The notes under the pieces are model-generated. The model saw only the letters and a program-made list of their open reading frames with translations. It was not told the DNA's origin and did no database searches. DNA of 61,752 bases, filler included, from Trichosphaerium sp. ATCC 40318 (Eukaryota; Protista; Tubulinea): assembly GCA_038496445.1 (NCBI GenBank). It is 3 parts of 3 records of this genome, joined end to end, with 100 filler letters (N's around TTAATTAATTAA, not from the genome) between each part and the next. Parts side by side here need not be neighbours in the genome. Positions count along the whole stretch, not along the records: positions 28,747 to 50,852 come from JALMLS010000190.1; 2 more parts are not named here. One strand, given 5' to 3'. The position numbers and the translations under genes are program-made. Positions 29,075 through 50,852 of the stretch are shown piece by piece (the first letter of the stretch is position 1; each line of letters starts with the position of its first letter).

Positions 29075-29597
29075 CGTTTCACCATCTCTAAAAAAAAAAG
29101 CCTCAAAGTATTTGTATCGGTCGGTAAATCAACGTACATGTTTCATCTTCTCTAAACAAAAAATAGTTTAATGTAATTGTAACTGTTACCAGATTGTTCA
29201 CTTGACCAAGTTTAGGTATGTTATAGGTACTCAATGAGCACACTTACTCTTTGTATAGTACCTATTGAACCGATAATAGTCAAGAGCCTTCCTTTTTGCG
29301 TATATATTGGATTTTTCTTGTGAGTCGCGGGCGCTGCAGTCTCCAAGGATTCTAAGAAGACTATCAGCTGGCTTAGAAGCACACCTGACGCTCTTCATTA
29401 AGTCATCAATGACATTAAACCCTGATCAATTGCCTGGAGTAAGCGGTAGAGAAGACTTAATATCAGTTGTACACTGAAGAGGAAGAGATTGAAAGATTGC
29501 TCTAAGCGTAGATGCTAGAATTCTCCTTGCGACTCACGGGAGCTGCGCTCCTGTCGAAGGATTTCAATGAGAATGCAAGCTTTCTTGCTAACATCAT
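29075..29597. repeat. Dispersed repeat, inverted copy at 39678-39990; possible transposon relic
   Basis: ctcaaagtatttgtatcggtcggt...gtacctattgaaccgata is shared in inverted orientation; this copy has about 200 extra nt. Confidence 0.75.
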
Positions 29598-30369: not shown

Positions 30370-31491
30370 CTAGTTAACTTCTACATGCGCACCTGAACAA
30401 CGCAATTCAGCGATACATGAATGTGTCACTTTTCCCAGACGTATGAGAGTGATTTTATGAGCTCCTTTAAGAGCAGCAATGCCCTCATTTGTAACATTAA
30501 GATATCCAAGTGTGATGGTATGCACACCAGATAGAGCAGCTATACCTTTGTCTGTAAGATTTAAGGAAAGAATAAAAATTGTATGAACACCAGCCAAAGC
30601 ACTTATTCCATCATCTGTTATCTCGTTGCTCCTACACATCGCATACAAATAAATTGAATGAACGCCTGCAAGTGATTTAAGACCCTCATCTGTCACTGAG
30701 GTACCTCCAAGGTATATTGTATGAACACCTGATAGATGTTTCACACCTTTATCTGTGATTTGAGAGCACAGATAAAGACTTATTTTGTGTACGCCTGAGA
30801 ATGATTCAAGATCTTCATCTCTTACCTTCGTATCGTTTAAATTGATAGAATGAACGCCAGAAAGTACTCCAAAGTTTACGTCGTTGAGGGTTTTACATTT
30901 ATTTAGAGTTATGGTGTGAACTCCTGCCAGTGCTTTGAGACCCTCACGTGTAATTCCAGTACAACGACCAAGGTTTATTTTATGTACTCCAGCAAGCGCT
31001 TTTAGTGTAGAGTCATCAACGCAAAGCCACGCAAGATTTATTGTATGTACGCCAACCAAACTACTCAAACTTTTCTCATCAAGTGGTGTTTCTGAACGAG
31101 GAAGAGCTGATAGATCAAGATGCTTAACACCCTTCAGGTTAACTAAATGCTCCTTTTCTCGTAATTTATAAAATATCATTGTATGTCTTAGAACGCCCTT
31201 GTATTGAGATATCATTGCAGATTGATACGGCTTTGTTATAGTTGCTTGAAGGTAACCAACGTTTTGATGAATTATATCTGAGAAAAGATGATTTAGTTGT
31301 GATAACTTGTATCGAACGTCATCGTGAGAGGTTTGAGTAATAAGTGTTAATAATTCAATAGGAACGTCCAATATTCGTGTTGTTTTAGCGCTAAGGCGAA
31401 AGTAAGTCTTTGTACGTTAAATGGCTATTTTAACCAACATGTTTAATGTGATAGTTGGTTGTCAATAACACCGAACGCACCTCTGTTCCAT
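30370..31491 (-). CDS. F-box-like + LRR protein, intact (11-nt first exon plus one long exon)
   Basis: ATG GAA CAG AG|GTGCGT...TTAG|C gives MEQSAKTTRILDVPIELLTLI...LSQLNHLFSDII, followed by about 11 LxGVHTIxL repeats. Confidence 0.85.
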
Positions 31492-31768: not shown

Positions 31769-33151
31769 ATGGCAGAAGAAGGCGCGAAGCGGGAAATACT
31801 GGAATTTAAAAAAAAAGACCTAGATTTCACTGTGACGCTCTGTGACGGCTTAGAAATATTTTGCAAGTCCATATTTCGCAAATACAGCGTTACAATATCA
31901 AATGACGCTCGAGCACGTAAACTTACCAAAGAACGGTGCCCAACCCTCGCACATATCTTCACTATGATGAAACTAGCAATTAAAGATGATGTGCGCCAAT
32001 CGAAGCTAGCAAAGACTTCAACTAAAACCAAATAGACTTCTCGATTTTCCTTAGACGTAAGCACAAGCGAAGGAGTTGTTTTGGAAGTCTCAGAGATCGA
32101 CATCCTTGATATCAAACAATCGCTGTTCCATATTTCTCTGTTACAACAACCCGTCGATACTCAAGTCATAGCAGAAGTAGTGGTTCGTGAAGGAGAATAA
32201 ATATCACGTGATGCTAACAACTTTTTTTTCAAGGTTGCCGATCTTAGAAGCCAACTTGCTGCGTTGAAGGCTAGTCTCTTGGGAGAAAGAACGAAATCTG
32301 AAGGGCTTGAAATTATGGTCAATGACCTAAAGACGAGATTGGCTTCAGAAGAGAATAAATCGCGTGATTTAGTTGCAGCAGTAAACGAATTAAAACTCAG
32401 TTTCGCAGAAGCATCAAAAAAGTCTGAAAAAGACTTTCTAGGTCTTCTCGCAAAGCAAACTGCTCGAGTGGACTCACTTGAACGAACGCTTTCGAATACA
32501 AAGACAGGATTAAGCGCTGTAACACGTTCACAAAAAGCAGCGGATATGAGTATCAAGGCTGTACGAACTAAGGCACTAGCGATTGAAAAGAACCTCACAA
32601 AAGTCGAAGAAATATCTAACAAGGCATTATGGAAGTTTAGTTTGCAAGAAGAATCATACCTGTCACTCTCTGAGCACGACACACGCGTAGAGGGTAACAA
32701 TTATAAGATAGACTCGGATTGCTGGAGGCACGGTGTGGTATATGTAAATGGTAGTTTTGCTTCAGGAGCCCACCATGTTGAAATCAGGTATTCAGTTTAT
32801 GTTACTTAACAATATTAACTGTATTGTAGTGTGAAAGCTTATACAGGAACTAAATTCTATTTGGGAGTAAAGGCGACAGGTTTTGGCGAATCCCATAAAA
32901 AGACATACACTGCCACGAGTAAAGGTGCTCGCGAGCGAGTTACACGTGAGTTGTTTCTAATTTTGTTTGTTGACTTCTCCATAGATGTAATATGTGTTAC
33001 ATTGAATATGTACAAACGAACAGTATCAATCTATTCGAAGGGAAGTAAATCAGAGCCTTTCAAACTTAGTGGTAGTTCATACAAGTTATATTTGAAAATG
33101 AAGGACAGAACAGTTGCACGCTTACTTACTTCTGAATGCTGGTCTGTATGA
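31769..33151 (+). CDS. Coiled-coil protein with a C-terminal SPRY/B30.2-like domain
   Basis: Spliceable exons; heptad-rich middle; SGAHHVEIR...FYLGV...DVICVTLNMYKRTVSIY resembles SPRY strands. Confidence 0.6.
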
Positions 33152-37645: not shown

Positions 37646-38611
37646 TTACACAATTATAGTTTGTTCTTTACCATCAACCCACATTGATTGATACTTTAGT
37701 TTTCCATCTTTATACCAGCCTTTAATATCTCCATGTCTTTTACCATCAACCCACGTGGACTGGCTCTTAAGCTGTCCATTTTCATACCAGCATTTAATAT
37801 CTCCGTGTCTTTTACCATCAACCCACATGGACTGGCGCTTAAGTTGTCCATTTTCATACCATAATTTACATTCACCATGCCGTTTATCATCAACCCACAT
37901 GGACTAGTCCTGAAGTTGTCCATTTTCGTACCATCCTATACTTTCACCAGTTTGTTTACCATTGACCCACATGGATTGGCCTTCAAGTTGTCCATTCTCA
38001 TACCAATCTCTACGTTTGCCATGTTGTTTGTCATTGGCCCACATGAATAGATACTGTAATTGGCCATTCTTAAACCATCCTTTACTTTCACCAGTATGTT
38101 TACCATCAACCCATGAGGCTTGTCGCTCCAGTTGTCCATTGTTATGCCACTTTTTAAATTCACCATGTAGTTTACCATTAACCCACATGGCATGGTATAG
38201 TAGTTGTCCGTTGTCATACCATGCTTTATTTTCACCATGCTGTTTATCATTAACCCACATGGATTGGACCTGAAGTTGTCCACTTTCATACCATGACACA
38301 CACTCACCTTCTTTTTTACCATTGACTTGTGTGTACTGCTCCTTGAGTGATCCATTTGGATACCATTCTTTAATCAACCCATTTACTGTGTATTGATGAG
38401 ACTTCACCTTTCCACTTTTATACCATCTTATCCATATCCCTTTTCTTTGTAATACTTCATTAAAATGAGTATTTGTTGCAGCTCTCTTTGATAGAGTGTG
38501 GAATTTCGTGAATGTTTCAACGTTGAAAGTACAAATATAGGTTTGAAGTTCACATGGAATATCCAATAAAGTCAAAGCATGCAATTCATTGCACAATTTT
38601 CTTTTACACAA
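37646..38611 (-). pseudogene. F-box-like + MORN-variant repeat protein with one in-frame TAG
   Basis: LLDIPCELQTYI N-terminus; about ten 24-aa repeats WYENGQLxxQSMWVNGKxHG; TAG at 37904-37906 sits at the conserved Q position and the frame continues to 37646. Confidence 0.85.
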
Positions 38612-39677
38612 GGGACTAGAATACTACGAAGAAAAAAATGTTAGATAATAGTACAACAATATTATCTTGTGTCAGTCAAGCTAGGCTGCTGGTTTGTTGG
38701 CCTTTACTGTTGTAAGAACTACAAATAAGTAGTTTTGTACTGAGTAAAAAACTGGATTGACTGGTTCGCACTAGTTTTCAAGAAATTTGGCACGTGACGC
38801 GTGATATGTCCTATTTCTAAGAAATCACGTGTTTTTGCGCCGTTTTGTTCTTACAGCATAAATCAAATTAAAAAAAAAACCGAACGGGTAGTTGTGCTTG
38901 TTATTAAAGCATAGCCTCAAAAAACAAAGCTAAGGCGCAGTATGCACATCGTACGTACCATGTGCATAGTGAATAAATACTGCAAATCCTGCCGCTGCCT
39001 TGGAGACTTGTTGCGCCTTCGGAGAAATGTTTTGCTGGTAGCTTACTAGGAACGACTTTTTTTTTTTACCACAATTGTGTAGAAAACTGTCAGCTAGTGT
39101 CTAAGTACAAAGTGCAAACGTACGTAAGTATCGTGAGTACTATTAAAGGCTACCACATGCCGGTAAAGCGACCTAATTGTCACTGACTTGCATTACAAAT
39201 TGACATTTAGAATCACAACAATCGTTAGATCCCTATCGTCCATTGGCTCCTACAAACAACATACACCAGATTGGAGGAGAACCTATCTCTTGGCTTGACC
39301 GCTTGGTCACGAAGCCTGAGACCCTTGTTTTATTAAAAGTCACAGAACCACAATAAAACAATCACCGAAAAACCAAAAACTTTTCCGAGTACATTGTAGT
39401 CATTGCGTAATTGCCTCTAGCCGTTGTTACGCCTCTAGGTTGTTGACTTTGTACGTTAGTTCGCCAACCTCCCTTAGTCTCAAACGTCCGTAAAACCTGG
39501 TTTGTACAGCCATAATCCTTAAATTATCCAGCTGACAATTCATAACAAATTCATTGTGCTGACTTGTATAAGTAACCTGGAAATGTAATATGTATGTAAG
39601 ACTTGACTGAATTCTAACACATCTTAAAGGGTTTTATTTTGGACTGAAAATGAGAACAATAAACATTAGTGAGACGG

Positions 39678-39990
39678 AGATGTTAGCAAGAAAGATTGAG
39701 CTCGCGTTGAAATCCTTTAACAAGAGCGCAGCTCCCGCGAGTCGCAAGAAGAATCTCAACATTTACGCAAAAAGAAAGGCTCTTCTATCGGTTCAATAGG
39801 TACTATACAAAGAATAATTGTGCTCATTGAGTACCTACAACATATCTAAACTTGGTCAAGTGAACAATTTGGAGACAGATACAATTACATTAAACTATTT
39901 TTTTTTTAGAGAAGGTGAAACATGTGCGTTGATTGACCGACCGATACAAATACTTTGAGACTTTTTTTTTTAGAGAGATGGTGAAACGTA
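39678..39990. repeat. Inverted copy of the 29075-29597 repeat
   Basis: Direct sequence match in reverse complement. Confidence 0.75.
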
Positions 39991-40253
39991 CACGTTGGGA
40001 GCTCTTGTACATCCTGATTATATCACTGAGATCATGAAGATGGATGATTACGAAGCATACATATGGGAAAATCGTTACTACCCAATAGTGTAAAGAAGAG
40101 AATTTGAGACAGAAGAGAGCACGAAAGCATTGGACAGTTTTAAACCTATTTCCGTATATGTTAAGAACAAATGTTGATAATCTCAGCTTGGGTTCTTGGG
40201 TACTACCAAGCATAGTACAATTCTGATTGTAATATACTGAACGATCATGCGAG

Positions 40254-41006
40254 TAGAGATGGCAGAAATACCGGTCCGAACCGGTTCCGGACCGAAACGC
40301 AAAGACCGGTCCGTAAACGGTCCAAACGGTCCGCTGTCAAAGGGAGTACCCTTGGAAAATCAGAAAAATAGCCGAAAAAGGAATTTTTGTCAAAGGGTAC
40401 TCCCTTGGATTTTTATCGGTCCAAACGGTCCCTGTCACAAAATCTCAGAACCCTCCATCTATTGACCTACTCACTGTGTGCATGCACATAAGGTGGCTGT
40501 ACACTTTTTGTGGCAGGTTTGAATATCACCACTTTTTTTTTTTCATACCTAAAATAGTTTAGATACTATTATTTCGCGTAAGCAATGCACTTGATAAGTT
40601 GCTCTACGCGCACAAAGTGATAAAAAGATGTTTGGGTGAAAGTGTATGAAAGTATGTAACATCACGTGATTTTGTCCAAATGTCAAAATAACGTCACCAC
40701 AGGCACATTGTGACTCAAAAAAAGTAGCGGTTAGGCCAGCGTGACCTTGTTTTACCGCGCTAAACTTAATTTTGTTAAAACGGGCTGATTGAGGGCTTTC
40801 AACCACTCTATGTGTAGAACTCTCAATTTTAAGGCGTTTCAGGCTACTTTTATTCAAAATAAAGTGAGTGGTGGTTCAAAAAGAAGCCACTTACATTGTT
40901 ATTCACTGAATGAATACTGCTCTTGTTCTAAATCACGGACCGGTTACGGACCGAAAACCGATATATTGAAACCGGACCGGTATCGGACCGGTATTTGCCA
41001 CCTCTA
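40254..41006. mobile_element. Non-autonomous hAT-type DNA transposon (753 bp)
   Basis: TIRs TAGAGATGGCAGAAATACCGGTCCGA / TCGGACCGGTATTTGCCACCTCTA; perfect 8-bp TSD CATGCGAG at 40246-40253 and 41007-41014; subterminal (A)CCGGTCC/GGACCG repeats; no transposase ORF. Confidence 0.93.
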
Positions 41007-41195
41007 CATGCGAGTCGCAGATATGTTCGATGACCGAAACAAGCTCCCAAGAGTAAAAGGAATATCGCAAGAGTGTATCAATGCTTCTTAAACAGGTAAT
41101 ACGAGCAAAATGAAAGGGTTTAACAAATAAACTCCATTGTGTACTTTAACTAAGTTGTTTTTATTTGATTAAAAGCACAGTAAAGTTGTTAGTGA

Positions 41196-41597
41196 CTAAC
41201 AGCTTCCACAAGCAGCTTCGCTCCAGCAACACCATTTATCACTTCTGATGCGAAAGCATAATGGAGATCCAGGGTAGCAGTATGCAGTTGAACCTAAAAA
41301 AGGTAAGTATTTAAGAATCATTCTTTGATTTTTAACATACATTGACCATTCTTTTCACGACCACGTTTACGCCATCCAGGAGGACACCATCCATTTGTAT
41401 CACATGTTTCGCCACACAACAATGGTCCTTGCTAAATGGGGCGTTAGTTAACATACAATGTAAAGTAGCAATAGACATACCTCAGTTGATCTCTTTTCGT
41501 GCATGTCTGGCATTTCTTCAGAGTCTTTAGATTGGGTTGTCAAGGCAATTGGTATCAACGCCAAAGTCACCAATAAAAATAATGTTGTTGTGTTCAT
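41196..41597 (-). CDS. Prepro Cys-rich secreted peptide (10 Cys), copy 1, 3 exons
   Basis: MNTTTLFLLVTLALIPIALTTQSKDSEEMPDMHEKR-STE|QGPLLCGETCDTNGWCPPGWRKRGREKNGQ|CSTAYCYPGSPLCFRIRSDKWCCWSEAACGSC-TAG with GT-AG introns. Confidence 0.88.
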
Positions 41598-41944
41598 TTG
41601 TTGTTTGTTTGAAGAAGAGGTTGGTTGTTGGTTGTTGTTTTGTATTTTGGTTTGAATGCACTTAGCAATCCAGTTTAAGTTAAGTCAGATTATTCACTGA
41701 AATAAAGTATCGTAAGTCGTTTACCTCATTTCTTTCGCTAAATCTTTTATCCATAATCTCTTTGGTATCAATACAGAGAACAGAAACAGGGTTTTAAAAC
41801 AGTATTAGACAGCATAACAAAGCTTCAACCCAATAACATATTAATAATTTACCGTAAATTTCACGTGAAATGGGAGACTTAAATTATATTGATATCTTAT
41901 TATAAATACAAACCATAACAAAAACAACCACACCTCATAGAACA

Positions 41945-42344
41945 ATGAAAACAACTTTTCTTTTTGCTTTTGTACTCATGGCATTAACTGTTGCCTTGGC
42001 GGTCCAATCTAAAGACTCTGAAGAAATGCCAGATATGCACAAAAAGAGATCAACTGAGGTGTGTCGACCCCTACTTCTACATTGTATGTTAACATGCCAT
42101 CTAGCAAGGACCATTATTGTGTGGCGAAACATGTGATACAAATGGATGGTGTCCTCCTGGATGGCGTAAACGCGGCCGTGAAAAGAATGGTCAATGTATG
42201 TTAAAAATCAAAGAGTAGCAAACTTCTTAGTACTTACCTTTATTAGGTTCAACTGCATACTGCTACCCTGGATCTCCATTATGCTTTCGCATCAGAAGTG
42301 ATAAATGGTGTTGCTGGAGCGAAGCTGCTTGTGGAAGTTGCTAA
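41945..42344 (+). CDS. Prepro Cys-rich secreted peptide (100 aa, 10 Cys), copy 2, 3 exons
   Basis: MKTTFLFAFVLMALTVALAVQSKDSEEMPDMHKKR followed by the same 65-aa mature peptide; TAA at 42342-42344. Confidence 0.88.
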
Positions 42345-42826
42345 TATAGCAAAGTCATACTTGTTATACCAATCACGTTGTCTATCATAAACCTGTTTAT
42401 TAAAAACATCAAACATTTCTCTCGTTGTTTTTTTGTTCCCCTCACCATTTTGAATTACATCACTTGAATTTTAACCACTAACAATAGAGAATTTTTCTCT
42501 AAGCAGTTGAAGAAAAAGTAAAAAATGTGTCAGTGACACAGCAGTCAGCTACTCACCTGAAACTGCCGTATGCGATAGGTTAAGGTTTGTATTTCAAGGG
42601 GAAGATCTTAACAGAGATGCACAATAAGTACATTATATGCAATTATCATAGGAAATATGTGCCTTGCTCTTTTCAGCAAAAAAGGAACTTTTAATGCCTT
42701 ATTTAAGAGCAGCAACACCTTTTTCTGTCAAATGAATGGGCCAGATCTGCTTAAACAGTAATGTACTACTTATCCCTGATATGAGGCCGCAAACAACGCC
42801 GTTTAGAAAACAATTTTGTTCACTAT

Positions 42827-42925
42827 CTTATGCAACATCCCAAACAGCCAAAAATGATGCATACATACTACACGTGCATGTTGAATACAATACATCATTT
42901 CTGGCTGTTTGGGATGTTGCATAAG
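42827..42925. repeat. 99-nt hairpin with a 33-bp stem (tiny MITE or pre-miRNA-like)
   Basis: cttatgcaacatcccaaacagccaaaaatgatg ... catcatttctggctgtttgggatgttgcataag; one mismatch. Confidence 0.85.
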
Positions 42926-43379
42926 TTAGAAAGAGGAAAAAAACTGTAAACATTTTTGGAAAAAGTGCACTACAACAAATGAAAAGCGGTTAACTCGGTT
43001 TTATATCGCTAATCAAGATCAATAAGCTGAACTTGACGTTTTTTGCGGAGCCACGACTAACGTTTTAGTGTGCACAATCATGTTCGATGCACTACTACTC
43101 TTTATACACTTTCAAGGTATAAATGATGAACAAAAATAACCTAGCTAGAAGATTTTCACATTTTACAATAACGTCATACCATAAAAACAGTAAAACGTAT
43201 TTATTTTTTCTCACGGCTACAGGTTTATATTAAGCTCTCATACTTACTGTGTAGATTCAAAGCATGCAGTGCTTACACCGCAGCACATTCAACTGCTTAG
43301 CGAAAAATTCTCTACTGTTGTACTTTTTCCGTTTAGACCTTGGAAAAGCTGATGTATTGTATGTTTCATTCAAGTTTTA

Positions 43380-44010
43380 CTAATATTTTCTGGAAAGTGA
43401 GTTTTTAGCACTTTTAGCAGATCTACCAAGATCTGACACTTCTGTCAAATGGTGTAGATCTATCAGAATGTGAACTATTTGTGTTACAATGTTGTCCTTC
43501 ATGTATGCCTTAGGTACCTTACATGAGGCAAATGGCAAATATAAGGAGTGGTATAAAATGGTAAACCCAAGATACAACAGGCATGGGTAATGGGTAAAAA
43601 AACGGGAAAGAGGAAAACATGGTTTGACAATGGACAGATCAAATTTGAATGTAATATGATTGATAGAAAGCTAATGTGGGTCAATGGTAAACAACACGGT
43701 CTGGCCAAAGCGTGGCATGATAATGGGCAACTTAGCGTGGAATGTATCTGGATTAATTGTAAAAGCATGGCATGAAAGTGGACAACTTGAAGTACAATTA
43801 ATGTGGGTCAACGGTAAACAACACGGTCTGGCCAAAGCGTGGCATAATAATGGACAACTTGAGTCACAATCAATGTGGAGTGATTCCAAATTAAACGGTG
43901 AGGCCACAAGATGGTATGAGAATGGGCAAATTGAAATACAATGTATGTTTAATAATGGCAAAGAAGTTGTTGAGACAAAAGAGTGGCACGAAAATGGTGA
44001 ATGTAAATAG
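43380..44010 (+). pseudogene. MORN-variant repeat gene, frameshifted
   Basis: WHDNGQL, WHESGQLEVQLMWVNGKQHGLAKA and WYENGQIE repeats distributed over several frames. Confidence 0.8.
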
Positions 44011-44343: not shown

Positions 44344-47300
44344 TTATGCAATCAGCATAGTTTTTATTATTGTTTGGATAACAGGATTATGACAACTAAT
44401 ATCAAGGCTTTGATTTCGAATCTTATCTGATAAGAGCTTATTCATCTTTTTACGCAACTTGTTCATAAGCACAGCTAAAAAACTAGTTAAAAAACTGTGT
44501 TTTTTCAAAAAGAAATTCGATTGGCGGGATGTGCATAAAACAATTAACAAAATAAATAGCTCAAGTAGGTTTGTTATATACATGTAAAAAAACTCCAAGG
44601 AACAAAAATTCCTGAGCACAAACATCACGTGATGTTGAATTGTAGGAAACATTTTTTGAACCAAAAAAAAGATTTTTTTGTTTCTGTCCGTACCCATTTT
44701 CCCAGGTAACTGAAAACTCATCCACTTATCAACATATACAGTTGGTTTAGAGTCGTTCCCATTTATTCTCACATCAACATTTTTACCAAAGAGTAATAAT
44801 GGAAATGGAGAAATCATAGTAGTGCCATGAATGAAAACTTTCGATGTTTTTACTTTTTCTGTAAAAACAAACCAAGTTGTTGGAAAGTCCTTCAGGGAGA
44901 AATTGACAGAAGATGGATGAATAAATACACTCTCACGATTAGCTAGTTCATATCTCCATGCTCTCTTAACGTCTATAAAAAGAGAGCAGTTAGAGAAGAG
45001 TAAACCACAAAAAGATGCTTACTGTCCCTATTTCTGACTTTCGCTTGAGCAACATTTGGGTATAATCCAGCAACAAGAATAGCTTTAATGAGTTCAATAT
45101 TGTCACCATTCTCATTATCTCTTTCGTCACCTGATCCAAAACCTGCTTCTCTAACAAGGTTCCTACAATTTGATACGTTAAGAGTTGAGCTTGATTATAA
45201 TTCGTTTTTGTTGGTTCATAGACCGATGACAAGTGCTAACGTACTTGAACTCTCGCTTCAATTTAGTAATAGTGTCAAGTGTTGTTTTAGATAAGTAATG
45301 ATCTCTACAGAACCTTGATCGATCTTTTGCTCTTGTTTCCCTTTTGAACAAATGTCAGCAATCGCAAACAAAACAACACTGACGACAATAAAGCGGAGAA
45401 TTCAAAAAGCTTAACCACTCACATGTACTCTTCATAGGCATGAAGGTTTGCTATTAAGTCAGAGTTTGATCCACCAGAGATGTTTTTCTTCTCAGCGTTG
45501 GCTTGATCTCTGTAAAAAAGTTAATTATATTGAGAACCAAAAAAAAAAGAAAAGACACGTATACCTTTCATCAAAATTACTAACAAAAGGTGTACGAAGT
45601 GTCAACGATGCACATATAGTCAATACAGAGTCTAAACATCCAAATATCGATGCGAATAACATCATCTTTCCCATTTGTGCTTCAACCTAAACCCGTCTTT
45701 AAGAAAAAATCATGAATCCGGTTTGATTATAGTACGGGTAGTTTAGCAAGATGTATGCCAAGTGGTGATAAATTTTCAGCTTCATCCATAGCGCCTATTC
45801 CTATTAAGGAATGTTTTGAATGTTGAATCGCAGAATCAGGAGGTTTTTCAAGTGCTCTCGATAAAAAGTTGCTAAAAAAAAGCTGTTAGAGGTATCAACC
45901 TTTACCTTTTTATGAAATAACAGACTTTGAATAGTCCAAACAACACGGCTATTGAACGACAACAATAAAGTCGTGTTCAAGTAAAATAACTAAAAGAATA
46001 ACTTACTCGATTCTTCCAAGTTTAAGCAGACGGATTTGCAAACACAGCTCATCCAATGGTACACGTTTGATCTCAGGTACTTCATATTCGGCCAAGCGAC
46101 TCATTTGGATCTCTGTAACAAGATGGAAACAGAAACCAGGCTTGACACGACCTGCACGACCACGACTATAAAAAAATAAGAAAAAGAACTCTGTTATGAT
46201 CTATACCGTTGTCGTGCTGATGCTTGAGAGGCGTAAACCTCTTGAAGAGAAGCCAGTCTAGACTTTGAATCCCATGTCTTTTGTTTAGCTTTACATGTGT
46301 TGATAACAAAGACAACATCATCAATTGTTACAGATGTTTCTGCAATGTTTGTTGAAATGACGATTTTTCGTACACCACGTGCTGGGCGCCTAAATATCTT
46401 GTTTTGGTCCTCTGAATATTACGCATTAGTATTGTTATAAAGTAAAAAAGAAACATACCTGTTGATAGCGAAGAATGGAGAGGATAAACATCAACTCTAT
46501 TGGTTCGAAAGAAACTTTCATCTAAAATATCATGGTAGAGTTTTCTAATCTCCGCCATACCAGGCATAAAGATGAGTATCTATAATGCAGTGAGTGAGCA
46601 CATTAAAATTGTTCAATTTGTAACATACGGCTCCTTCTTCGTATTGAGAGCAGATGTGCTTCACAAGTTGAACAATGAGGTGGTTGTTAATAATTTTGGG
46701 ATCAAGAGCCTCTAGAGCTCTTACAACGCTACTAGAGTATTTCTGCTGATACATTTCTGCTTCCCTTTATTATAAATCAATTAATAATCAATAAGGATAA
46801 AGATGAGAAGAAAAACGTACTCTTGTTTTAGAGTTTTTGGCTTCTTTCGAAGAACAAACTTGTTTGTAAGCTGTTTTGTGTTATATTTTGTTTTAAATAG
46901 AATGTCTTCCAGAAAATATTCTTGAACAGGATGAGTAAACCCAGGAATCTCGATTTGTGGGCATTTGAAGTATGAAGCAAATAAATCAGCATTAACCTAA
47001 GAAATACGAAATAAATGAGATAATAAGAAAAAATTAAGAAAGAGATAAGGAGTTCATACAGTGGCTGACATAAGAATAATCTTCAGGTCTTTTCTTTGCT
47101 TGATAAGCTCTTTCAATATAATCAACAAAAAATCACTACAGAGAACAATCAGAAGAGGTTCTGAGGTTTTTCATAGAAGGGTTGTTTTTTTTTAGTACCA
47201 GTTTAAGTCACGCTCATGAACTTCATCTAGGATTACATGTGATACGCCATGTAGAAATCTATCGTTCTGTAAACGGCGTAACATTACACCAGTTGTACAG

Positions 47301-49949
47301 AAGAGCACCTGTGTCTTCGCACTTCGCTTTGTTTCCAACCTGCAATAAAAATCAAAATCTATTACACTCGATTTCTAATACCTTATACTATAACCCACTT
47401 GGTTACCAACCTTTTCTCCTCGTTCAGCGGCCACCCTCTCAGCCACAGCAATTGCAGACAGTCGCCTTGGTTGTGTACAAATGATATTACACTCAGAACC
47501 ACGTCCTTCGTTTATGTACTTGTCAAGAATAACTTGACCAACCTGAGTAGTTTTACCGCAACCAGTTGACCCTATATAAACGGTAAATAACATTCAAAGG
47601 TGTAAATAAATGGACAAAAACGAAATAAAGCGATGAAGCTTACCAGAGAGGAGAACAACTTGATTATTACTAACAATTTCGATGATTTCATCTTTCATTT
47701 TGTAAGTTGGTAGCTTTGTCCTAAGTAGTGACTTAATGCTTCTGTACGCTAAGAAAGTGGAAGGGTACCTGATACGTTGCATTGATTGATATTTTTTATT
47801 ATTCTTCTGCTTATCTTGAAGGTCATCTAAAAGCCTTTCTGAATCTTCTTTTTGATGTTCTAGTTGTCTCTTTGTTTTGACACGTTCATAGTAAATTGGC
47901 TTCACTTCAGGTTCTGATACTACTACAGGCTTTGGTTTTGGCGTAACGAAAGCCTTCTATGGGTAGTAAGAAATTAAAATAGTTGTGGTTGATTTGTCTT
48001 ACCTTTTCGTTTTTGGCTTGCTCTTCTTGTAGTCGTGCTTGAGTTCTTTCAATAAAAAAGTTCTTTGATGCAGCTTTACCACCTCTATTACCAGATCCAC
48101 GACCTCTATTAGAACCGCGACCTACACCACCTGTATTGTTACCACCACGGCCTCTACCTCTGTTATTTGATCCTCTTCCTTTTCCGCGTCCGCGTCCACC
48201 TCGTCCTCTATTGTTTCTACCTCTTCCTCTACCATTTCTTCTTCCTCTTCCTTTGTTGTTGTAGTTATCTTCTTGACCTTTAGTCAAGGCATTGGGCTCC
48301 AGAGACTTGACTTGATCAGGAACGTTGTCTTGTACCCAACTTATAATTTCAAACAACATTGGAGAACCAATTAAGTCAGCGGCTTCTGGCAATCTTTTTG
48401 TTAATAGCTCTGATAGTACTAGGCTCAAGTTCTCTAAGAAATATTAAATAACATAGTATTGTTGGGGTATACATACTCGTTCACAAAAGCCATGAATGGG
48501 AGAACATTAGGGTAAGCACTTGTAGGTGGAATGTGAATTTCAAAAACACTTTTGTTTGGAATGTTGTCTAGTTTCATCTAGGGACACTAAGACCTTCATC
48601 TTTATGTTTATAAGTACCTCCATAGTTACTAGATTATCAGTACACGTAAGGCCTTCTTCAAAAATATCATTGAGACTCTCTATTTCCTCTTGTTTGTTCT
48701 CTTTCTGCTCCTATTTTTTCTTTAGTAAATTGTTGCTGTTCTTTTTTTTTCTTACTTCCTCATCTACGGATCCCTCAATCTCTTCAATATCTGATGGGAA
48801 GAATGTTTCCATAACGGCATACATAGCTTTTTGCTTGTCTTTATCACACTCAAGTAGAATTTTTTCAACTTTAGGCTCTGGTACACCATATTTTGAGCTT
48901 AACCTAAAATGAATCAATAAGTTTTCTTTTCTCCTAGACACCATCCACTTACATGCGAACATAATTATTAAGTTCAAATCCCAAACCACCCTTGCTTTCT
49001 GGGAGAATAACTTCTACCTAATAAAAGACCTGATTAGATAAGAAGTTGACTTAAATAAAACTTGCCTGCGTGGAAAGATTTGTGGACTTGAATTTCCTGG
49101 GTAACTCTGTCTCATCAAGATTGAGGCATAACCACCCAATAGCTTCATTAACATCGCCATTATTATTGCTTAATCCAAGTATAGCCTAAATCATTCATAA
49201 GAATAAATCACGTGGGGTTAAACGCCATACCTGTGTCTGAGTAAATCCCATACTTTTTATTCTGCCAATAGCTCTATTATCTTTTGTAGCATTGTAATTA
49301 CTGTCGCCTTCTTCGCTAGTTTCATCATCGCTCTAATGTTATCCTATAAATACCGTTTCCCTTCCGTTAAGGGGTTAACCATACCAAGTTCTTTAACATA
49401 TCTAAAAGCAAGAAAATGAGACAAGAAGAAAATAAGAAAAGGTCAAAAAAAATTATGTAAATTACCCATAATCATATCTTCGTTTTTTGAAGAGAAAGTA
49501 ACGTTCTCTGCGTTTGAAGGTCCTTTACGAAAAATATCTCGTCTCGCGGAAGGTTTTTTAGGTCCTCTTGGGCCTTTTCTACCTTTTTGAGTATTGTTAG
49601 TTACAAATAAATTAAAAAGGGCTTTAAAGCAATACCTTCAACGGCTACATCGCCGTAATCGTCCTAAAACGTATTTATGATAAAATTATAAGTTACTTGT
49701 TATTACCTGATGCTGTGAAGGATTCCATGGGCGTTGTTGTGAAGAAGCTTATACGTTTAGACACTTTAAGAATATTATACAGTACCTGCAGCCAATTTCG
49801 CCGCCTTCTTTTTTTCTACCGCTGTAAGCTATATATTTAATATTTCTAAGCGTACTCGCGCTTCCTGGTGGATTTGTCTTTTTGTTTTGACGCTTATTTG
49901 AGGCATTCTTCCTAAACTTCGCTTTCATGCGCTTTTTCTTTGGCGGCAT
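44344..49949 (-). CDS. DHX57: DExH-box RNA helicase, DHX57/DHX36/DHX29 group (UBA-like, RWD, helicase core, HA2, OB)
   Basis: [80 protein letters not shown]; [12 protein letters not shown] and an RWD-like segment (YPNVLP; [13 protein letters not shown]) favour DHX57. Confidence 0.88.
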
Positions 49950-50291: not shown

Positions 50292-50852
50292 CTACTCTTC
50301 AGCACGAAACTTAACTGGACTATTGCTGATATGCGTATCACCAATCTTGATATCGACTTCATATCTTCCTTTCTTAGGAAGCATAACATCAACACGGTAT
50401 CTACCATTATTGAAATCTATCACGAAAAAAATTAGAAAATAAAGAAAGAATAGTAATAAATCAAACAGAAAATAAAACACAGCCATACCGAGCAGTTCAG
50501 GTTCGGTAAGTACAGGTCCGGCTACTTCAACATCAAAGTTATCACCTCCAGCAGTGCACTTGTTTCCAGAAGAATCTTTGGCCTAATAAACAGGTCAGAC
50601 TTTCAGGTCTAAACCACAAAAAAAAATAAAATAGTACATCAATGAGTATTGTAAGTTTCTTTCCAACTTTAGGATCACCCTTCATGTTTGCTACAGTCGT
50701 AGCTGGAGAAGCAACTATTCAACAAGTTATACCAAGTAGAGACGAGGTTTTTTACATACCTCCAGCGACAGTAATAAGAGTCTCTTCTTTGAGCACGTTT
50801 TGTCCTTTGTAAACAATACCAAGTTGGTATTGACCAATTCTACTTCCTTGGT
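50292..50852 (-). CDS. Filamin/ABP-120-type Ig repeat protein, 3' end (5' lost at contig end)
   Basis: AKDSSGNKCTAGGDNFDVEVAGP...DFNNGRYRVDVMLPKKGRYEVDIKIGDTHISNSPVK fits the filamin repeat consensus. Confidence 0.85.

Follow-up and report, generated by a model that had tools for sequence, protein, structure and literature searches.

A Head-to-Head Pair of Spliced and Transcribed Genes in the Amoeba Trichosphaerium sp. Encodes a Predicted Ten-Cysteine Prepropeptide Rated as a Lineage-Restricted Orphan

Introduction

The genome of Trichosphaerium sp. ATCC 40318 (assembly GCA_038496445.1) carries two divergently oriented three-exon genes, here called A and B, which are spliced and transcribed and whose predicted products share one and the same mature peptide with ten cysteines. 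On the strength of profile and sequence searches, this peptide is rated as a lineage-restricted orphan family without a detectable relative outside its own lineage, and the differences between the two copies point to strong purifying selection on its mature part. Secreted disulfide-rich peptides are a main source of antimicrobials, toxins, inhibitors, and signals, and to our knowledge almost none is known from free-living lobose amoebae. The pair described here means that such peptide genes exist in this setting, are transcribed, and appear strongly constrained, and it offers a concrete target of 65 residues. If its fold is new, it would add a scaffold to the disulfide-rich peptide repertoire, and if the peptide is antimicrobial, it would represent a new class of effector in amoebal feeding and defense.

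In the sections below, we describe the organization and expression of the two genes, the predicted precursor and its variants, the divergence of the copies, their genomic surroundings, and the search for relatives, and we then weigh the possible roles of the peptide and compare it with known systems.

Gene Organization, Splicing, and Transcription

The two genes lie within the window, by which we mean the whole stretch of 61,752 nucleotides that was analyzed, on the piece of about 22 kb derived from record JALMLS010000190.1 (positions 28747-50852). Gene A occupies 41196-41597 on the minus strand and gene B 41945-42344 on the plus strand, with 347 bp between the two start codons, in agreement with the original prediction of a head-to-head pair of three-exon genes about 350 bp apart. 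That prediction had also held the genes to be hidden from the ORF track, and the ORF list indeed shows fragments of them and nothing more; small multi-exon genes such as these escape ORF-based annotation.

In gene A, exon 1 (41481-41597, minus strand) carries the ATG, the signal peptide, the propiece, the KR site, and mature residues 1-3, and its junction to exon 2 is seen in contigs. It is followed by intron 1 (41432-41480; 49 nt, GT..AG, with a CTAAC-like branch motif), by exon 2 (41341-41431), which encodes mature residues 4-33, ends on the first base of the codon for Cys34, and is represented in contigs of runs X1, X2, X6, and X7, by the phase 1 intron 2 (41294-41340; 47 nt, GT..AG), and by exon 3 (41196-41293), which holds the remainder of the mature peptide and a TAG stop. 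A putative polyadenylation signal, recognized by its motif AATAAA, stands 31 nt after the stop (41160-41165, minus strand). Gene B mirrors this arrangement on the plus strand: exon 1 (41945-42058) comprises the ATG, the signal peptide with its candidate ALA/VQS cut, the propiece, KKR, and mature residues 1-3, and is separated by intron 1 (42059-42104; 46 nt, GT..AG) from exon 2 (42105-42195), which is in turn separated by the phase 1 intron 2 (42196-42246; 51 nt, GT..AG) from exon 3 (42247-42344), ending with a TAA stop. Here the putative polyadenylation motif is ATTAAA (42399-42404, plus strand), 55 nt after the stop. Both gene models come from manual splicing within 40900-42700, and the terminal exon of A and the second and third exons of B are also represented in contigs. 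All four introns are of the GT..AG type and measure 46-51 nt; three of the four begin with GTATGT, all four end with TAG, and CTAAC-, TTAAC-like, or ACTTAC motifs lie about 10-15 nt upstream of the acceptors. In-frame stops are present upstream of both ATGs. The spacer between the start codons (41598-41944), whose halves bear no similarity to each other, is the presumed site of both promoters, and a TATAAAT motif lies at 41901-41907, 44 nt upstream of the ATG of gene B.

Evidence for splicing was drawn from the contigs of four runs (X1, X2, X6, and X7) placed on 41000-42600, with each run accounting for at most one tenth of the sampled words of this stretch. Runs X1, X6, and X7 are recorded as '?' or as a guess, and their transcriptome nature is read from their exon-limited, intron-less contigs. 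Two contigs of X1 and one of X6 skip a 47-nt segment with CT..AC ends at 41294-41340, that is, intron 2 of gene A, and one X1 contig skips exactly the 49 nt of its intron 1, whereas the single contig of the DNA-like run X2 (41257-41434) retains intron 2. For gene B, contigs of X1 and X6 stop at 42058, the end of exon 1. At loose contig ends (41433 and 42103, in X1, X6, and X7, with X1 and X7 contributing at 42103), sequence of the exon 1 type is spliced to exon 2 through the TAG acceptor of the gene models. Contigs of X6 and X7 link exon 2 with exon 3 by apparent opposite-strand joints at 41341/42247, 41339/42249, and 41291/42196; in each of these junctions, the two halves align best to opposite arms of the inverted pair, and the first and last bear on intron 2 of gene B. 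The spacer at 41702-41971 and the outer flanks have zero contig coverage in X1, X6, and X7, and one X6 contig extends from exon 1 of gene A to 41680, which gives the A-type transcript a 5' untranslated region of at least about 80 nt.

Because intron-less, exon-limited contigs occur in X1, X6, and X7 and the intron is kept in X2, the two genes are spliced and transcribed. The exons are joined exactly at the predicted sites, as the original prediction had asked RNA data to confirm, and the alternative AAG acceptor that it had named as a possible refutation is used by none of the X1, X6, and X7 contigs. Transcripts of the A/B type were assembled in all four listed very small runs of one study and in two other small runs; their assembly from several such runs is consistent with an abundant message, contig depth being no measure of the expression level.

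The Precursor and the Mature Peptide

The precursors comprise 101 residues in A and 100 in B. Both begin with a hydrophobic leader, whose core reaches a 12-residue Kyte-Doolittle mean of 2.78-2.88 and which is followed by small residues at positions -3 and -1; candidate cleavage sites obeying the -3/-1 rule are ALA|VQS in B and ALT|TQS in A, as judged by this heuristic. By hydropathy and the same heuristic, both precursors thus possess the N-terminal signal peptide typical of dibasic-processed prepropeptides. Downstream of the leader, both continue with QSKDSEEMPDMH and then E/K-K-R, giving a propiece of about 16 residues with Lys-Arg at its end, and Lys-Arg directly precedes the mature domain in A, in B, and in every variant whose junction of exon 1 with exon 2 could be read. 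The layout of signal peptide, propiece, KR, and ten-cysteine peptide that had been proposed is therefore present in both genes. The propiece had been described as acidic, which is right in sign and too strong in degree: it is mildly so, with a net charge, KR included, of about -2.5 in A and about -0.2 in B.

The mature part, identical in A and B over its 65 residues, contains ten Cys, four Trp, two Tyr, eight Gly, and five Pro, and its cysteines are spaced C-x3-C-x5-C-x14-C-x4-C-x6-C-x8-CC-x5-C-x2-C; in length, identity, Cys and Trp content, and spacing, the translations match what had been foreseen. Its computed mass is about 7.2 kDa and its computed net charge about +2.

Divergence of the Two Copies

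Global alignment of the two arms reveals a sharply bounded block of similarity. Identity is at random level in the 5' flank (39%) and the 3' flank (43%) and rises to 77% in exon 1, where the first approximately 60 nt, encoding the signal peptide, are strongly diverged and the propiece part is nearly identical. It amounts to 80% and 83% in the introns, with indels, to 96.7% in exon 2, and to 96.9% in exon 3, and the similarity stops at the stop codon. The signal peptides and introns have thus diverged, as had been noted from the outset.

Within this block, the 65 mature codons differ at exactly five positions, all of them synonymously (pS 0.125, pN 0), precisely as the original prediction had counted. 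Five changes occurring at random would all be synonymous with a probability of 3.6e-4. Of 155 replacement sites none has changed, against 5 of 40 synonymous sites (Fisher P = 3e-4) and 17 of 92 intron sites (P = 2e-8), and divergence at synonymous sites is statistically indistinguishable from that of the introns (12.5% versus 17-20%, P = 0.46). The conclusion of strong purifying selection on the mature part, read from these substitution patterns, stands. It is not the whole explanation of the identity for which it had been invoked: because similarity falls off abruptly within the signal peptide and again at the stop codon, the near-identity of the copies also reflects gene conversion or partial duplication. 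The block from propiece to stop would have a more recent common history than its surroundings, acquired through arm-to-arm gene conversion or through partial duplication, after which it would have drifted by 12-20% at neutral-type sites while selection acted against any amino-acid change. Read in this manner, the locus would illustrate, neatly and on a small scale, how selection and gene conversion work together on an inverted gene pair.

Variant Transcripts

The contigs also hold variants of the two window copies. Contig differences were translated and combined per contig, with those away from contig ends being considered, so that the view of the variants is a partial one. Synonymous changes are found at Cys46, Phe47, Asn16, Asp14, and Ala61, and Arg24 is retained through a two-base change from CGT to AGA; synonymous change affects six codon positions, against two replacements, T15E and D52S. 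Cysteine is kept wherever it is seen in the variant transcripts of X1, X6, and X7, and so is the reading frame. The junctions between propiece and mature part read EKR|STE, EKR|ATE, and ERAKR|ATE, with KR constant and the residues before it varying. The type marked by T15E and the AGA codon for Arg24 is present in X1, X6, and X7, and in X1 it co-occurs with near-identical contigs (at least 99%); the family therefore has at least one more expressed member, an older one, which probably resides in the same organism.

Genomic Surroundings

The draft genome of Trichosphaerium sp. has been reported to have 37.69% GC, 8.7 introns per gene, a mean intron of 75 bp, and a mean exon of 154 bp, with other published amoebozoan genomes showing clearly different GC or intron statistics; it carries many genes derived from giant viruses, in which F-box and MORN domains are the most frequent, and the deposited data on the organism include single-cell transcriptomes. 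The piece studied here (28747-50852) has 37.0% GC, and its genes consist of short exons separated by many introns, which measure 42-70 nt. An Rfam scan of the piece gave no match.

The peptide pair is flanked, in inverted orientation, by genes with MORN_2 (YwqK-like) repeats at 37649-38623 (minus strand) and 43557-44007 (plus strand), the left of which has an F-box-like start. Both shift frame (at about 37904 and within 43675-43772, respectively), as a very short intron or decay would produce. The language-model neighbors of the larger MORN gene are giant-virus F-box/MORN proteins, and the best sequence relatives of the MORN protein are at most 43% identical and mostly metagenomic, the few named ones being bacterial. 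The pair may belong to a larger palindrome that includes these flanking genes; between them, only the repeat units cross-match.

Farther along, a helicase gene at about 44800-49330 (minus strand), which served as a sample of the splice signals of this genome, combines UBA-like sequence, a weak match to RWD that stays below threshold, a linker rich in RGG, and DEAH-box-like motifs; judged by eye, it is DHX57/YLR419W-like, with exons of 100-520 nt and introns of 42-70 nt. Near the end of the piece, 50295-50718 (minus strand) encodes a C-terminal filamin/ABP280 repeat (Pfam E = 1.6e-6) in a gene truncated by the piece end. On the other side, a 333-residue RNI-type LRR_6 ORF at 30370-31371 (minus strand) has a recurring GVHxIxL unit and an F-box-like N-terminus and is without an ATG, an upstream exon being likely, and a coiled-coil ORF at 32264-33151 (plus strand) is followed by ORFs without Pfam match that may together form one multi-exon gene.

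Several repeats accompany these genes. At 42823-42929 lies a near-perfect hairpin whose arms, each of 40 nt, are 93% complementary and enclose a loop of 27 nt. Around it, inverted repeats of 32 nt (42480-42511 and 43288-43319) delimit a segment that may represent a small non-autonomous transposon; contig coverage from X6 is present at 42458-42565. Inverted repeat copies about 10 kb apart (29085-29275 versus 39786-39976, 93%; 29497-29595 versus 39679-39777, 80%) are dispersed at about 29 kb and about 39 kb and are probably fragments of mobile elements. The stretches 40186-40444 and 40925-41000 are rich in CGGACCGGT-type units, with an exact 11-nt tandem at 40973-40994.

Search for Relatives

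The Cys spacing had initially been described as unrecognized, and it matches no described family in the Pfam, word-based, HMMER, or PDB-sequence searches made here. With the whole precursor as query, hmmscan found no family in Pfam-A at E <= 10, and a word-based search of 5.8 billion proteins yielded no relative of it. The best matches in a PDB sequence search were an MBD domain (E = 0.52) and an aerolysin N-terminal domain (E = 1.3), in neither of which a cysteine was aligned, and neither is significant. A strong match to a described family, which would have overturned the idea of novelty, was thus found by neither profile nor sequence searches. Three matches (P0001, P0002, and P0003) emerged when 1.84 billion representatives were scanned exhaustively with HMMER, and they were rejected as homologues: they are tandem-repeat proteins whose individual repeats reach just 10-25 bits, their significance arises by summing, and the Cys pattern is absent. 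Their likeness to the peptide is short and local, at the CPxG-aromatic...NG..C loop, and the contigs of P0001 and P0003 have bacterial-type genes around the matches.

At the DNA level, a degenerate pattern for YCYPG-x11-WCCW, which recovers both window copies as a control, is absent from the metagenome and prokaryotic genome contigs, and a peptide-pattern search of viral contigs found none. A tblastn of the precursor against the rest of the 22-kb piece (28747-50852) gave no further copy, an exact look-up in public assemblies had neither the precursor nor a neighboring ORF on record, and a full-text literature search for the peptide motif strings returned no mention. Orphan Cys-rich genes are common in protist genomes; for genes of this size, the support behind the present pair is unusually good.

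Possible Roles of the Peptide

In the model that we propose, the precursor would enter the secretory pathway and lose its leader after Ala19 in B and around residues 20-21 in A. Kexin/furin-type convertases cut after KR, an established substrate rule, and such an enzyme would cut after the conserved KR to release a mature peptide, whose ten Cys would form five disulfides and keep it in a compact, stable domain. A second KR in the conserved basic loop (WRKR|GREK) may allow a further cut, which would yield a two-chain, disulfide-linked form. Its target would be a conserved component of the microbial surface, to which it would bind either extracellularly or within food vacuoles. Considering the layout, the apparently abundant message, and the lifestyle of a bacterivorous or algivorous, microbe-eating amoeba, we tentatively suggest an abundantly made defense or antimicrobial peptide, a role that we regard as the likeliest of those considered without calling it probable. 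Its weakly cationic character (+2), which sets it apart from many membrane-active peptides, counts against an antimicrobial role. Moreover, many arms-race families of antimicrobials and toxins show the opposite of the pattern found here, in which the mature part is conserved and the signal peptide changes fast, and a ligand or a structural binder would fit this pattern equally well. Because the mature part is invariant and its charge weak, there is room for roles other than defense.

Among these, a signaling ligand, such as a secreted pheromone, a gamete-recognition peptide, or a growth-factor-like peptide with a conserved receptor, seems unlikely, though deserving of serious consideration. 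The complete conservation of the mature part and the very few replacements in the variant transcripts would suit a ligand, as would the modest net charge and a prepro and dibasic layout such as that of peptide hormones and ciliate pheromones; the life stages of Trichosphaerium are, in addition, poorly understood, its life cycle being complex and possibly sexual. Transcripts in every listed small run suggest, on the contrary, constitutive and abundant rather than stage-restricted expression, and there is no receptor candidate nearby. Less likely again is a binder of carbohydrates or of the cell coat, in which an aromatic-, Gly/Pro-rich, disulfide-locked module of hevein- or tachycitin-like kind would attach to prey walls or to the fibrous test that Trichosphaerium bears. 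The four Trp, two Tyr, eight Gly, and five Pro among the 65 residues would fit such a module, apparently abundant expression is in keeping with it, and the local C-x(n)-CC-x5-C with flanking Trp resembles hevein-type motifs, but the chitin-binding Pfam families are silent at E <= 10, the overall Cys spacing is different, and the repeats or multidomain architecture frequent in coat proteins are missing. The sexual cycle of Trichosphaerium has never been seen in culture, and a more far-reaching proposal, namely that the peptide founds a new five-disulfide fold family of one amoebozoan lineage and is an extracellular recognition signal for life stages or gametes, possibly in two-chain form through the internal KR, rather than a defensin-like killer, is one to which we attach a small probability, below that of a carbohydrate binder.

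We consider it improbable that the five-disulfide scaffold presents its RKRGREK loop to an enzyme or channel, as a protease inhibitor or as a toxin against predators or competitors would. Many inhibitors and toxins are built on ten-Cys scaffolds of 55-75 residues, and the basic loop is conserved, Arg24 surviving a two-base codon change; against this, the peptide matches no TIL, WAP, Kazal, Kunitz, antistasin, or toxin model and no PDB sequence, and diversifying selection has left no sign. Most improbable of all is that the identity of the mature parts is a mere trace of recent conversion or duplication in lineage-specific ORFs with little or no function. The restriction of similarity to the block from propiece to stop between flanks at random level would agree with this, and so would the lack of homologues in any search. 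Neutral-type sites within the shared block are, however, 12-20% diverged while 0 of 155 replacement sites have changed; the divergent transcripts of X1, X6, and X7 keep the Cys codons, the KR, and the frame, with mostly synonymous changes; and the splice sites of both introns are intact in a product that is transcribed.

Comparison with Known Systems

The original prediction had likened the gene products to beta-defensin-fold antimicrobials and toxins, and this part of it found no support: at E <= 10, Pfam gives no match to a defensin or toxin model, and the spacing before the CC pair falls outside the beta-defensin and big-defensin ranges. With the prepropeptides of defensins (beta-, big, and plectasin-like CS-alpha/beta), the precursors have in common a signal peptide, a short propiece, a basic cleavage site, and a small disulfide-rich cationic peptide, and a CC pair near the C-terminus recalls the beta-defensins in particular. 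Defensins have, however, 6-8 Cys in 35-50 residues, compared with ten in 65 and a net charge of just +2 here. Beta-defensins and big defensins follow a pattern of six Cys, about C-x4-8-C-x3-5-C-x9-13-C-x4-7-CC, from which the present peptide departs with its ten Cys and its C-x4-C-x6-C-x8-CC, two gaps of which lie beyond these ranges, and the precursor matches none of Defensin_beta, Defensin_beta_2, and Defensin_big in Pfam at E <= 10. The fold typical of these defensins is an antiparallel beta-sheet of three strands with disulfides 1-5, 2-4, and 3-6. In the CS-alpha/beta signature, a helical CxxxC pairs with a CxC located on a strand; the CxxxC element is present here (mature Cys9-Cys13), whereas CxC occurs nowhere in the peptide, and again no Pfam model matches.

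The carbohydrate-binding modules of hevein/CBM18 and tachycitin are likewise small, rich in Gly and aromatic residues, and held by 4-5 disulfides, with CC-x5-C beside Trp; PF00187 (hevein/CBM18) nevertheless gives no match at E <= 10, and of its C-x8-C-x4-CC-x5-C-x6-C-x(n)-C-x3-C, only CC-x5-C is common to both. Among inhibitors, the TIL, WAP, and antistasin Pfam models do not match at E <= 10, and no PDB sequence does so below E = 0.5. As far as sequence comparison can tell, the peptide is thus not a demonstrable member of the beta-, big, or CS-alpha/beta defensins, of the hevein-type binders, or of the WAP/TIL/antistasin inhibitors.

Amoebapores, naegleriapores, and other saposin-like antimicrobial proteins resemble it in its proposed role, being small secreted or vacuolar proteins of amoebae directed against ingested microbes, but they have six Cys in an all-helical saposin fold that Pfam recognizes, whereas no model matches the Gly- and Pro-rich peptide with its ten Cys. 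The water-borne Euplotes pheromones share with it a protist origin, a prepro form, secretion, disulfide richness with ten Cys in some species, and lineage specificity without known wider homologues; they differ in being helical bundles that are encoded on nanochromosomes and vary among mating types, whereas the two copies here encode one and the same peptide. No similarity to these pheromones was detected at the sequence level, and the genome considered here uses TAA and TAG as stops. What the products of genes A and B do belong to, as far as can be read from their translations, is the general class of prepro, dibasic-processed, disulfide-rich secreted peptides, a class that denotes a kind of molecule and not a homologous family.
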